A stretch of 64,000 nucleotides of DNA from Felis catus (Eukaryota), in contig NC_058372.1 of assembly GCF_018350175.1 (NCBI RefSeq), positions 52,514,001-52,578,000 on the forward strand, written 5' to 3'. The position numbers were made by a program, and so were the translations under genes. Every line of letters starts with the position of its first letter. Position 1 is the first letter of the stretch. The notes under the pieces are model-generated. The model saw only the letters and a list, made by a program, of their open reading frames with translations, was not told the origin of the DNA and did not search any database. Positions 19,033 through 42,702 of this stretch are shown here, piece after piece.

Positions 19033-20200
19033 GTTTATAGGAGATAAAAAGGAGTGCCTACTAATGAGGGTACAGTAAACACTCAGAGGTACAAGACAGC
19101 ATGGAGCATCTGGGAAACTATACATGCTCAAAAATGTCTAGATTGCATACGATAAGGAATATAAGAACTATCCTATGAGGAACCATCCAAAGGTCGAAGC
19201 AGAGAAATGGCAGGATCAGGATGGTACAGTAGGCAGGTTAGGGGGTATAAAGAACCTATGTGAGTAAGATGAAACTGGAGGAAAATTGACTAATTGATGG
19301 GTTGGTCAAAGATTCAAAATAAGAGTCAAGGAACTATGCACACATGGATATAAAAGAATGAAGTCGAGGATAAAAAAGGAGTCTGTGATGAATCAGTGGT
19401 TTCTAGTGTTGGGTGCTCATGAGAACAGTGAAATTGATGAAGCAGGGCTGTCCACCAGGGAGTGATGATAAAAATACACTGTAGTCTTAAAATGTATCTG
19501 GAACACTTTGGTTGAGATAACAACAAATATAACTGGAATACTGAAAAATAATGGGATTGAATTATGCTTTAGAGAATCATCAATCTAGAGGTTTTAGTTA
19601 AAACCATTAAAGTACATGGAATTGTACATAGAGAATGTGTAAAATGAGAATGGGAAACATCTGAGGATAGACATTAAGCTAAAAATACAGTTCAACAGAA
19701 AAAGACAAAGATCCTGGGAAGAGGCCTAACTATGGTCAGAAAATATCAAATGAATAAGTATCAAGAGAACTAGAAGAGCTGGTTGCCAAAGGAAGAGAGA
19801 GTTTTAAGAACAAAATAGCAACAAAACGTGCAATGATAAAAGTAGGCAAGATGAAGTGTTAAAACTATTAATGTTGATGTCATGGAGATGATTAGGACAG
19901 TTCAGAGAGCAGTTTCAATAGAGCAATAGTCTTAAAAATATAAATTGAGGAATAAATACGCACCAAATAAGAGCACAAATCTAGACTCTTCATTTAAGAA
20001 TCTTATAAAGGAGAAATACAGATCTGTAGTTAGGGGGGAGGTTAAGATCCATTCCAATCTTGTAATGATCTTATCAGATTATATTTTCCATAACACTGTT
20101 GTTTATCACCAGTAACTTAGTTTTGAGGTAAATAACTGTCATACTGTAATATTGCAAACACGTTCTTGTTGTTTTTGTTCTGTTCTTATTGTTATTTCAG

Positions 20201-20335
20201 CTATGGTGCTATGCTTGGAAAATGAATCCACTTCCCAAACCATTGATTGCACATATTTAAGAGAGCAATGCCTAAGTGATACAAATGGATGTAAACTTGC
20301 ATGGAGAAAGATGGAAGATTCATGTAATGTTTCAG
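20201..20335 (+). CDS. GFRAL: GFRAL exon 2 (end of signal peptide, first half of D1)
   Basis: Pyrimidine tract and tttcag acceptor at 20200. Encodes (A)MVLCLENESTSQTIDCTYLREQCLSDTNGCKLAWRKMEDSCNVS. TCAG|gtaaaa donor; 135 nt, phase 1-1. Confidence 0.96.
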
Positions 20336-22836: not shown

Positions 22837-22989
22837 GTAACCCCTGCAAGATGAAGGATTCATCAAACTGTAACCTGAGCATCCAGTCCTTGGTGGAAAA
22901 CGATTTCCAGTTTGAAGATTGTCTCTGCACTGGTAACCTCCATTGCACTATTAACAAATTGCTTGGGAAAAAATGCATCAATGAATCAG
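22837..22989 (+). CDS. GFRAL: GFRAL exon 3 (second half of D1)
   Basis: acccag| acceptor at 22836. Encodes (G)NPCKMKDSSNCNLSIQSLVENDFQFEDCLCTGNLHCTINKLLGKKCINES. TCAG|gtaata donor; 153 nt, phase 1-1. The 5' boundary is slightly uncertain (see findings). Confidence 0.92.
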
Positions 22990-30700: not shown

Positions 30701-30816
30701 TTATTTCAGTTTTTAAAAACTTGGGTTCATTTGTAATAGCTCTCTTGAAAATTTTAATGGTTTGTAAAAGACAATAGATACAAGAATATTTATAAAAGAT
30801 AAGTCTATATGCTATA

Positions 30817-31020
30817 TTTGTTTATTCATTTATTTTATTTATTTTGAGAGAGAGTGTGCACTCGGACATGCACAAGTGGGAAGGGGCAGAGAGAGCAGGA
30901 GAGTGAGAGTCCCAAGCAGGCTCCCCACTGTCAGCTTAGAGCCCAAGGTGGGGCTCCATCTCATGAACCCCATGAGATCAAATCTGAATCCGATGCCTAA
31001 CCAATGGAGCCACCCAGGCC
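30817..31020 (-). mobile_element. CAN-SINE ending about 70 nt upstream of the extra exon's acceptor
   Basis: tttatttt tail, gagtcccaagcaggctccccactgtcagc...gagccacccaggcc. Confidence 0.88.
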
Positions 31021-31089
31021 AGTTAGTAAGATTAAATTATTTAATTTTTGGTCTCAATCTTTTTTTTTTTTTTTTTTTTAACTTTATAG

Positions 31090-31500
31090 AAGAATCAGCA
31101 CTGTCTTTACATTTGGCTTCACAGTCGAATATCACACAGTGGTTCCATCAGAAAAACACATCATTAATGGTTAGAAAAAAGATTGACTGTGTCACAGCAG
31201 TACATATGTGCCAGGAGTCGGAACATTGCACTCTGTTGTATGAAAATTTTAAGAAAACCTGTGGGAGAGAATCAGAACAATGCAAGACCCTTGATGGAGG
31301 CTACACGTGTGCAGCATTAAGAGAAAGTCTGAAAGAAACGATCTTGTGGAATTGTCATTGCAACAACCCTTCAAAAGTAGAGTGTATTGAAATTTGGAAA
31401 AGTTTGTTTGAAGATATTTGTATACAAGATGTTCACATGAATCAAGTTCCAGCCTACAGTGATGACTATGAAGAGGGATTCAGCCAGGAAATTGTTTCAG
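31090..31500 (+). CDS. GFRAL: Candidate additional GFRAL exon encoding an extra GFRalpha/GAS1 cysteine-rich domain (absent from the canonical human/mouse protein)
   Basis: T21-like tract and tttatag| acceptor at 31089. 411 nt open, phase 1-1, TTTCAG|gttggt donor. Encodes (E)ESALSLHLASQSNITQWFHQKNTSLMVRKKIDCVTAVHMCQESEHCTLLYENFKKTCGRESEQCKTLDGGYTCAALRESLKETILWNCHCNNPSKVECIEIWKSLFEDICIQDVHMNQVPAYSDDYEEGFSQEIVS, with 10 Cys in GFRalpha spacing. Transcription is inferred, not shown. Confidence 0.8.
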
Positions 31501-31705
31501 GTTGGTACACACAAGAAGAATTTAGGAACATTAAGTATGTAATCACGAATATGAATTAGGTAAAGAATATTTAATTTCTAATTCCAACTTTGTCATTTAT
31601 GCCTGTTTCTCTTTGACAATTAATTTTTTTTTAAAAAATGATGCCATGAATATGTCCAAAGGGATTATGAGGAAAGAGGCAAATGCTAAAAGGTTTTAGC
31701 ATCAT

Positions 31706-35705: not shown

Positions 35706-35762
35706 ATAACATGAAAGAGGATAATCAATCCAAGTGGAATCTGACCACTCTTCCCTATAATG
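35706..35762 (+). CDS. GFRAL: GFRAL exon 4 (D1-D2 hinge)
   Basis: tttttccttctag| acceptor. Encodes (D)NMKEDNQSKWNLTTLPYN, similar to human DNVKEDKFKWNLTTRSHH. AATG|gtaatg donor; 57 nt, phase 1-1. Missed by the ORF track because it is short. Confidence 0.93.
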
Positions 35763-36612: not shown

Positions 36613-36943
36613 GAATTAAAGGGATCCAGTCCTGTTTGGAAGTGGCAGAGGCGTGCGTAGGGGATGTGGTCTGTAACGCACAGTTGGCCCCTTACCTTAA
36701 AGCTTGCTCAGCAAATGGAAATCTATGTGATGTNNNNNNNNNNNNNNNNNNNNNNNNNNNNNNNNNNNNNNNNNNNNNNNNNNNNNNNNNNNNNNNNNNN
36801 NNNNNNNNNNNNNNNNNNNNNNNNNNNNNNNNNNNNNNNNNNNNNNNNNNNNNNNNNNNNNNNNNNNNNNNNNCCGTGAACATAGTTCCACCCCCTACTT
36901 GCCTCAATGTAATTCACAGCTGCCGAAATGATGAATTATGCAG
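36613..36943 (+). CDS. GFRAL: GFRAL exon 5 (D2, GDF15-binding domain, and start of D3); 140 N at 36734-36873
   Basis: ctttcag| acceptor. Encodes (G)IKGIQSCLEVAEACVGDVVCNAQLAPYLKACSANGNLCD...VNIVPPPTCLNVIHSCRNDELC(R). CAG|gtgagt donor; 331 nt, with frame kept across the gap. Confidence 0.96.
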
Positions 36944-37494
36944 GTGAGTAAAAACACGCATACCTTACTTTCTTATTTCGGCACCTTATTTGTTACAGTC
37001 CAGTCCTAACACTTGATCTCATTACATTAGCTACAGTTCCCACCGTCATCCAACATGATGTAAACAAAGCCAGACAATTCATATTTTTGAATCTGTGGTA
37101 CATGTGTAGCTTCCATTTTGAAATTCACATGCAGAGTATATTTTCAGAATAAGCAAATTCAGTATGTCAAGATTTGGTAGCCATGAAATAGCATTATTAA
37201 AATTAGACATTCAAGTTAGACTAATGAATAAATAAACAGACTTACATGTCAGTTTAATTTGGTTTTTGCTATGATTACAAAAGGCTGCTAAATGTCAGAG
37301 AGTTTTGACAAGGTGACTCTTCAAACTTACAAAATTAGTCTTCCTCTCCTAGGCTGGAGATCAGGAAGGAGAAGTTAGCTTGAGCCTAGCCTGGACATCC
37401 CCAGCACATATGTACACCATGAGGTCAGAAATGTACCCATTCTCCTCTTCCCAACCTCACACCCTTGATTTCCAAGGGAGTAATGTTAGTCACT

Positions 37495-40785: not shown

Positions 40786-42451
40786 TGTTTTGCCAATTAT
40801 ATATGTTTATGAGCTTACAGAAAATTGTAGTACACTATAGTTTCATATGTATGATTCAAGAAAGTAGTGAAAAAAAGTATTTTCTTAAAAAAATTCGACT
40901 TATTTTTTAAAAGCAAACCTCTACTGTGTACACACTTATTTTAAGTGCCATGTAATACAAAATTTGATGTTATATTAGGTCACAAAGGCAAATGTAATAC
41001 ATTCCATGTGCAGAAATGATACCAACTGCATTCTCTTGCATTTTGCAATGTAACCAGAAATCAATAGCAAAAATGAAAACAAAAAAATTCCATTTCAAAA
41101 AATACTTTTAAACAATTGTTTGAACAAAATAATAGAAAACTGCAGTATATCAAGAAAAGAAGGGTAATGAAACACTGTACATCAAAACATTTAAACCTGG
41201 AAAAGAATTTCTATCATATAATTTTTTGCCATATTTAACTCATATAGGTAATGTGTACTAATTGTATGATTTTTTAATATTAAGATATCCTTTAATTCAG
41301 CATTTGTGCAGAATATCACGACTAATTTTCTGAATGAAATAACTTCCATGAGTAGATAACTCCTACAACTTAAATGTAGCAAAATATATATTTAAAAATG
41401 AAAAAAATGACACCTAGGTACAAATATAAATTCCTTATATTTACATGGCATTTCTAGATAAACTTTAATTGAACTAAAGGAACATATTCTGCTGGCTCAA
41501 AAAATTTGTAGGATTTTTTTAAGTATAAATTTTAATAGATACTAATAAATTTTTGCCATTACATTAAAAAGCTGATTCCTTTAAGGTTACTTAAAATATG
41601 AGCTTATTAAAAATAGTTATGGATTTAAGCAGAGTATCACATTGTGGACAAATAAGCTCAAGATAAATGTCATTTATTCAGAAGATTTTCATGCATGTTT
41701 GACGGTGACCTATTCACAAAAGGGTAAGAAGTAATTTTAGGTGATCAATATTAAGTAGGAAGATTAATATCCTTGGTTCCACTGAGAATATCTTCTTTCT
41801 GTGAACATTTTAAAAGTCAAATTGTTGTTCATTATCTAGACTTTTATTCCAAGCTACAACAGCAAGAATCAAATACATAGAAATGTTATGAATAGATATG
41901 GTTATAATGGATTCTCAGTCATTAAATAAATTAATAATTTTTTTTTCAATTAGCTCTTGCTAGAGAAGCTCAAAGTATTTTATAAGTTCTAATTAGTCTG
42001 CTTAGAAATATTAAGAAAGAGTACAGTACTTCCCATCCTGTAGGAAAATTGGCTGGAAAGGTCAAGAGCCTTATACAAAATAACTTGGTAAGAGACAGTG
42101 ACCAAATAGCCACAAAAGCACATTCTGCTTCAAGAATATTGCGAATAAGTCCACCAAGTAGTTCATACTGCTCACCATCACCCGTGGAAATAAAATTAGT
42201 AATGAAAGATGATTCATCCAGGAAATCCTAAACTTAGCCTCTGTCTTTCATCACAAAAGGAAAATAATTCACAAGATTTCTCTTCTTTTACGGTCTCTTT
42301 TGGGATGCTTGAACATACCAAGTTTGTTTTCGGCTATATACCGGCATTTGGAGGGCTTTTTGTTTTATGTCAGTCTTTCATTAGATGAGGCAGCTCCACA
42401 TATTATTGTGGGATATCATTCAGACCAATTCCATTTCTTGATTCTTTCTAG

Positions 42452-42702
42452 GAGGCGCTATAGAACATTTCAGTGGAAATGCTGGCAGCAAGTGACTAGA
42501 AAGTGCCATGAAGATGAGTTTTGCATCAGTACCTTAAGCAAGCAGGATCTCACTTGCTCAGGGAGTGATGACTGCAAAGCAGCTTACATTGGGATCTTGG
42601 GGACAGTCCTTCAAGCGCAGTGCACCTGTAGGACCATCACACAAGGTGAAGAATCTTTGTGCAAGATTTTCCAACATATGCTTCATAGAAGATCATGTTT
42701 CA
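42452..42702 (+). CDS. GFRAL: GFRAL exon 6 (D3)
   Basis: ttctttctag| acceptor. Encodes (R)RRYRTFQWKCWQQVTRKCHEDEFCISTLSKQDLTCSGSDDCKAAYIGILGTVLQAQCTCRTITQGEESLCKIFQHMLHRRSCF. TTCA|gtaagt donor; 251 nt, phase 2-1. Confidence 0.96.

Follow-up and report, generated by a model that had tools for sequence, protein, structure and literature searches.

In published accounts, GFRAL is a receptor with three cysteine-rich domains. The main review describes a gene of nine exons encoding 394 aa with domains D1–D3, and the sole variant that it mentions is one in which exon 6 is skipped (PMC7299427). D2 of GFRAL binds GDF15 and D3 binds RET (PMC6760901, PMC7299427), and in the human complex the N-terminal domain of GFRAL is invisible and touches neither partner (PMC6760901). 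The solved GFRAL structures in the PDB (5VZ4, 6Q2J, 6WMW, and 9HYT) are all of the three-domain receptor. The GFRalpha receptors, unlike GFRAL, carry a GPI anchor, and D1 is their most N-terminal domain. In GFRalpha2, this D1 packs on D3 and also touches RET CLD1 (PMC6760901). A four-domain layout has been described for the Drosophila protein Gfrl (DmGfrl), with domains named D0–D3, and the invertebrate Gfr-like proteins differ from GFRAL in being about twice as long, in being GPI-anchored and in having no GDNF-family ligand (PMC3527400).

The cat locus studied here, a window of 64,000 nt, carries a large part of the GFRAL gene on its forward strand, and it differs from the three-domain layout by an additional coding exon at 31090–31500 in intron 3. 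We consider it very likely that this segment is a genuine cassette exon of cat GFRAL, that the domain it encodes (Dx) is of the GFRalpha type and is homologous to D1 of the GFRalpha receptors, and that it is ancestral in jawed vertebrates. The exon measures 411 nt, equal to 137 codons, and is in phase 1 at both ends. It is preceded by a polypyrimidine tract of about 22 T and an AG acceptor (31058–31089), the sequence reading aactttatAG directly 5' of position 31090, and it ends in ...TTTCAG at position 31500. The GT donor that follows reads gttggt, which is non-consensus at +3 and +4; together with the start of the intron that follows, it makes up the ~60-nt stretch 31501–31560. A stop-free segment with these splice sites and phases had been claimed in the original prediction from the bare letters, along with the spacing of ten cysteines in its translation, and all of these features are present as described. 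The assignment of the exon rests on the sequence itself, on a Pfam match and on a match to RefSeq.

The neighboring exons were placed by comparison with database sequences, and the proteins P0167 and P0047 served in place of a spliced model built from the exons in the window. Coding exon 2 (20200–20335, bounds within 2 nt) was recognized by exact 8-mer matches to residues 8–53 of cat isoform X4 and by its ORF translation, and encodes the end of the signal peptide and the first half of the canonical N-terminal domain, "D1" of the literature and here termed D1n. Exon 3 (22837–22989, 153 nt, phase 1/1), delimited by its splice sites and corresponding to residues 53–103 of P0047, encodes the second half of D1n and ends in ...CINES. 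Exon 4 (35706–35762, 57 nt, phase 1/1) encodes a linker, DNMKEDNQSKWNLTTLPYN, between Dx and D2. For exons 3 and 4 the placement originally given is correct, and their bounds have been slightly corrected to those listed here. Exon 5 (36614–36944) encodes D2, the GDF15-binding domain, and was matched to residues 260–300 and 348–370 of P0047, which flank a run of N at 36734–36873 inside the exon that hides roughly protein residues 301–347. Most of D3 is encoded by an exon at 42450–42644, as judged from residues 370–434 of P0047 and from the ORF translation. As exons 3, Dx, and 4 are all of phase 1/1, any of the three can be skipped without a frameshift, and several in-frame combinations are possible.

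The product of the Dx exon consists of a 29-residue linker with two N-glycosylation sequons (NIT and NTS), a GDNF/GAS1 core with ten cysteines (about residues 134–216) and a 24-residue acidic tail. When its 136 complete codons were compared with Pfam, the GDNF/GAS1 profile (PF02351) scored 25.7 bits, above its gathering cutoff of 22 (E = 2e-5), the match spanning profile positions 1–87 of 87 and Dx residues 33–110. The best sequence matches in the PDB were to D1 of GFRalpha1 (4UX8, 6Q2N, 7AML) and GFRalpha2 (6Q2O, 6GL7, 5MR4), with E-values of 2e-5 to 4e-4. All ten cysteines are present in cat and are invariant or nearly so in alignments of orthologs, with exactly ten found in 74 of the 78 GFRAL proteins that bear Dx.

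The structure of Dx was modeled with AlphaFold2 from an alignment of 66 sequences. The model is all-helical with pLDDT of at least 90 over residues 30–112, has five helices in or beside the core, and is disordered over its first 27 and last 22 residues. When this model was searched with Foldseek, the first fifteen matches listed were all chains of GFRalpha, GFRAL, or GAS1. Re-alignment with VIA-align again placed these families in the best 17 rows (Z 9.8 to 6.0), and the next row was an unrelated protein with Z of 3.4. The alignment to D3 of GFRalpha1 gave Z 9.8 and an rmsd of 2.7 over 88 residues, and structural alignment with VIA-align did not tell a kinship of Dx with D1 from one with D3. 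On the profile match and the predicted fold, Dx is a real ten-cysteine domain of the GDNF/GAS1 type, in agreement with the original prediction: an HMM match and a helical cysteine-rich fold, the lack of either of which was to refute that claim, were looked for and are present, the Pfam score being above its cutoff, the helical core confident in AlphaFold2 and the structural matches confined to this family.

The exon is already part of the cat annotation. The translation of 31092–31499 is an exact substring (residues 105–240) of RefSeq Felis catus GFRAL isoform X4 (XP_044913608.1, 511 aa), and the whole Dx exon corresponds to residues 104–240 of both X4 and isoform X1 (XP_044913604.1, 530 aa; UniProt A0ABI7WWA6_FELCA). 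From the numbering of the isoforms, it is probably found in X2 and X3 as well. The X isoforms of cat in RefSeq are computed models. Junctions between 22989 and 31090 and between 31500 and 35706 had been forecast from the DNA, and the residues at the junctions of X4 (...CINES-E...IVS-D-NMKED...) are those that they give, so that the cat RefSeq isoform is matched exactly. The remaining GFRAL exons of the window match that protein as well. A second cat protein of 393 aa (A0ABI7WW94_FELCA) differs only by the missing 137 residues of Dx, which means that the annotation treats the Dx exon as a cassette. Isoform X4 lacks ~19 residues relative to X1 at the end of D3 (...GEESLCKIFQHMLHRRSCFN; window 42450–42644 and downstream), so that two conserved cysteines are lost; use of an alternative donor is the presumed cause, and X4 may be a non-functional model.

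The description of the exon as hidden in an intron therefore does not hold, given its presence in X1 and X4, and neither does its description as a peculiarity of felids, as it is also found in dog, fox, whales, bats, pig, rabbit, rhino, hedgehog, mole, and many rodents, and in curated NP_ records of rat. The suggestion, made at the same time, that automated annotations might already include the exon was borne out by cat X1 and X4 and by other species. At the level of databases the Dx exon is already known, being listed for cat, dog, rat, and most vertebrates and curated in rat.

Homologs were then collected over a wider range of species. A HMMER search of 1.84 billion representatives returned 34 relatives, among them full-length four-domain GFRAL proteins of ~490–530 aa. 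By name they are the GFRAL entries in RefSeq for bilby, caecilian, fence lizard, and spotted gar, besides which there are partial models for elephant seal, giant pangolin, and wild camel. A profile search recovered cat X4 and a 31-member cluster at 90% headed by cheetah isoform X1, with cat X1, leopard, clouded leopard, jaguarundi, leopard cat, Geoffroy's cat, Arctic fox, and dog (XP_038409275.1, 560 aa) among its members. With the cat Dx as the scored region, annotated Dx was found across Laurasiatheria (cetaceans, Myotis, pig, black rhino, hedgehog, mole) and Glires (rabbit, hamster, vole, blind mole rat, grasshopper mouse, deer mouse, ground squirrel). Rat has two curated RefSeq proteins with Dx, NP_001388718.1 (isoform 1, 540 aa) and NP_001388719.1 (isoform 2 precursor, 510 aa), which are listed beside the canonical isoform 3 of 394 aa. 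Outside the placentals, Dx is carried by marsupials, about fifty clusters of birds, turtles, alligators, lizards including geckos, frogs, a newt, a caecilian, gar, and stingrays.

Of 128 GFRAL proteins collected, 78 have Dx and 48 are without it. Among the proteins without it are that of mouse, every primate entry seen, and those of several carnivores (panda, bears, seals, lion, tiger, and lynx), an absence that is to be read at the level of annotation and not of the genome. For panda, bears, seals, lion, tiger, and lynx, the records hold only forms of about 395–398 aa, and a "hypothetical protein" of elephant seal contains Dx while the RefSeq seal model is without it. Dx occurs at the same position of the gene from stingray and gar to mammals, and its age is thus at least that of the common ancestor of jawed vertebrates. 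By this distribution, the Dx exon appears to be ancestral to the GFRAL of jawed vertebrates, and the prediction of an old domain, as opposed to a recent duplicate of D1–D3, agrees with the range of its carriers. Two further records were unusual. One is a caniform-like model from MetaClust (P0158, 320 aa) in which D1n and Dx are joined straight to the stalk and transmembrane segment with D2 and D3 skipped, and which is either an odd isoform or an artifact. The other, from Denticeps clupeoides (P0027, 454 aa), is named "GFRalpha-2" by one source and has the D1n-Dx-D2-D3 layout of GFRAL; it is probably misnamed.

Comparison with the GFRalpha receptors and with the invertebrate proteins suggests an identity for the additional domain. 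On its own, Dx matches residues 26–114 of GFRalpha1 and D1 of GFRalpha2 among the PDB sequences. Using phmmer, residues 2–274 of GFRalpha1 (D1-D2-D3) were found to be colinear with residues 134–424 of cheetah GFRAL (Dx-D2-D3), and human GFRAL (6Q2J) aligns to cheetah residues 20–104 and 240–488, omitting exactly Dx. The likeness of Dx to D1 of GFRalpha1 and GFRalpha2 (4UX8, 6Q2N, 7AML, 5MR4, 6Q2O, 6GL7) thus covers the cysteine pattern, the helical fold, and colinearity, with an identity of only about 25–29%. A phmmer search of the PDB with a seal fragment of D1n and Dx (P0001) returned only D1 of human GFRAL, and this same search also missed the known match of Dx to GFRalpha D1.

The invertebrate Gfr-like proteins (DmGfrl; moth P0034, tardigrade P0237, Trichinella P0021) have four ten-cysteine domains in the same order as the long GFRAL. 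HMMs of D1n, Dx, D2, and D3 match the first to fourth domains of the moth protein in that order. The strongest match to these proteins is that of Dx to the second domain, at 52–61 bits: in moth the Dx HMM scored 51.8 bits for the second domain and 31.5 for the first, and in tardigrade the corresponding scores were 60.9 (residues 171–249) and 7.5, with D1n matching residues 26–91. The match of D1n to D0 is weak, at 10–14 bits. The original prediction had noted that insect Gfrl has four domains, and the likeness extends to all four being colinear in the HMM matches (PMC3527400 for the insect domains). By sequence, Dx is the counterpart of D1 of GFRalpha1 and GFRalpha2 and of the second domain of the invertebrate Gfr-like proteins. 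The simplest reading is that GFRAL has kept an ancestral D0-D1-D2-D3 arrangement in which Dx would be the homolog of D1 and, as a reasoned suggestion, the "D1" of human GFRAL would be a D0. A larger proposal joins this to function, namely that the four-domain GFRAL is both ancestral and physiologically used in most vertebrates, with the textbook "D1" being D0, Dx the true D1 and the three-domain form of human and mouse a derived, exon-skipped one; this we put forward tentatively, as a possibility in which our confidence is low.

The conservation of Dx was compared with that of the other domains at the protein level. Between cheetah and other placentals, the identity of the Dx core (residues 134–216) and of D1n was respectively 83 and 78% for whale, 80 and 74% for pig, 77 and 72% for Myotis, 71 and 64% for rabbit, and 52 and 46% for rat, and in most placental pairs the core equals or exceeds D1n. 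D2 (85–95%) and D3 (63–89%) are more conserved than the Dx core, and the linkers that flank the core are far less conserved than the core itself. With identity serving as a proxy, these values support purifying selection on Dx. Selection of this kind had been proposed from the cat frame alone, and at the protein level it is consistent with a core as conserved in placentals as the canonical D1 and with the ten cysteines kept in 74 of 78 proteins. Intact frames with all cysteines over many placental orders would be unlike a neutrally decaying segment of an intron.

Evidence for splicing comes from assembled contigs and curated records. Three Logan contigs encode a full four-domain protein, namely P0049 (557 aa on 2653 nt; a placental about 73% identical to carnivores), P0211 of the rat cluster (510 aa on 1680 nt) and P0217 of the Myotis cluster (536 aa on 1849 nt), and as all three are too short to hold the introns, they derive from spliced RNA. 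These intron-free contigs and the curated rat NP_ records show that the Dx exon is spliced into mRNA in placentals. The exon combinations vary between species. In rat NP_001388719.1 and in the Myotis models exon 4 is skipped and Dx is joined straight to the D2 exon, and the models of cat, dog, whale, rabbit, and marsupials keep both Dx and exon 4. Like the cat protein, rat isoforms 1 and 2 have a ten-cysteine Dx placed after exon 3 and before D2, with a core about 52% identical to that of felids; they differ from the cat protein in the skipped exon 4 and, for isoform 1, in an extra insertion inside D1n.

A further contig (P0003, 1088 nt) has an intact Dx frame and comes from a murine rodent other than Rattus, its Dx being 88–92% identical to that of rat. 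The Mus genome might likewise keep the Dx exon, despite only a 393-aa form being annotated. The intron directly after the Dx donor (31501–31560) is apparently conserved between species. Read-through of the donor gives ...SGWYTQEEFRNIKY in cat and GWYSKDFRNIKY and GWYLKEELRNIK in the unspliced Logan ORFs P0002 and P0003, respectively, and a tail of GWY..FRNIKY is common to the three. This stretch may serve to regulate alternative splicing of the exon, and a sub-consensus donor followed by a conserved intron fits a regulated alternative exon. The donor GTTGGT being off consensus at +3 and +4, and a Dx-less form of cat being annotated, inclusion of the exon may be partial or low. Among the sequencing runs with the exon, 14 small contig sets (44–421 Mb, from five studies; run type unrecorded) contain 100% of the sampled words of 31090–31500. 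This is unexpected for a random stretch of intron, and would fit either RNA data or exome-capture designs covering the exon; the sets were given no weight as evidence.

Two other explanations of the segment were weighed. One is that its frame is open merely by chance, or that it arose in intron 3 through a recent duplication, within the gene, of D1, D2, or D3. The stop-free stretch around the Dx exon (30768–31556, 263 codons) is the longest in the window, and first-order Markov simulation of the window, run 100 times, gave longest open stretches of 136 codons on average and 178 at most, none of the 100 reaching 227 codons or the real 263. A bare frame of 137 codons is nevertheless expected about 0.6 times per window of such composition, which lends the idea of chance some support and makes the open frame alone weak evidence, the strong evidence being the encoded product. 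That product scores above the Pfam cutoff, has orthologs at the same gene position across jawed vertebrates, and finds its nearest relatives in D1 of GFRalpha1 and GFRalpha2, not in GFRAL's own D1–D3. Chance or recent duplication is hence scarcely credible, and was ruled out by the Pfam match, the orthologs of other species, and the exact match to the cat isoform.

The other explanation accepts an old exon, and holds that it is a relic that is intact in the cat genome and is no longer spliced into functional mRNA, with the four-domain isoforms being artifacts of homology-driven models. Among 20 sequencing runs that contain the Dx exon, none is on record as RNA, and this, together with the sub-optimal donor, the annotated three-domain protein of cat, and the records of panda, bears, seals, lion, tiger, and lynx that list only forms of ~395–398 aa, is what a relic would lead one to expect. 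However, GFRAL is expressed in a tiny population of the hindbrain, and its absence from general RNA runs is accordingly expected. The frame and ten cysteines have stayed intact in many placental orders that have been apart for tens of millions of years, the conservation of Dx equals that of the canonical D1, and the exon is found both in cDNA-like contigs and in curated mRNA records of rat. For these reasons we regard a relic as improbable, and favor a cassette exon that is in use.

As a functional cassette exon, its inclusion would lengthen the protein by 137 residues, placed after the N-terminal cysteine-rich domain and before the short linker exon that precedes D2. The inserted part would comprise a flexible linker, an 83-residue helical domain of the GFRalpha type with five predicted disulfides (Dx), and an acidic tail. 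The product of inclusion would be a 530-aa receptor with four GFRalpha-type domains, equal to the RefSeq cat isoform X1, and that of skipping a 393-aa form with three, equivalent to the GFRAL of human and mouse. The canonical three-domain proteins (human, 394 aa, 5VZ4/6Q2J; mouse NP_995316.2, 393 aa; cat A0ABI7WW94_FELCA) have the same D1n, D2, D3, transmembrane segment, and tail, and differ from the long form in the absence of exactly the 137 Dx residues. In the cat, hindbrain transcripts would be expected to include the Dx exon.

The exons of D2 and D3 are unchanged in the long form, which should therefore still bind GDF15 and RET. An AlphaFold2 model of the full-length cat protein has four folded domains, with Dx (134–214) lying between disordered linkers (101–133 and 215–262). 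With a pTM of only 0.44 the interdomain packing of this model is unreadable, and a modulatory role of Dx is conjecture. By analogy, Dx could act as a module that stabilizes the receptor or sets its geometry in the manner of D1 of GFRalpha2, or alternatively as a spacer or a partner-binding domain.

These findings point to a gap between databases and literature, in that papers describe a three-domain, nine-exon GFRAL (PMC7299427, PMC6760901) and most vertebrates encode a four-domain form. No description of a four-domain vertebrate GFRAL was found in the full-text literature searched, and older papers on GFRalpha evolution (Airaksinen, 2006; Hatinen, 2007) may mention one. Published structures and pharmacology are, as far as found, all on the three-domain form, and the searchable GDF15–GFRAL papers yielded no mention of an effect of Dx inclusion on pharmacology. 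The exon itself is real, conserved, and coding, and could be recovered from raw sequence by a reader without tools; as biology it is not new. The residual interest lies mainly in species differences in GDF15/GFRAL pharmacology. Rat and dog are commonly used preclinical species, and if the four-domain form is used, Dx could alter the geometry of the RET complex, trafficking, and the pharmacology of antibodies and ligands in rat, dog, and cat. Should the long form predominate in the hindbrain neurons of any of these three species, Dx ought to be considered when results with GDF15/GFRAL agonists and blocking antibodies are carried over from one species to another, and likewise in veterinary use in cachexia or nausea.
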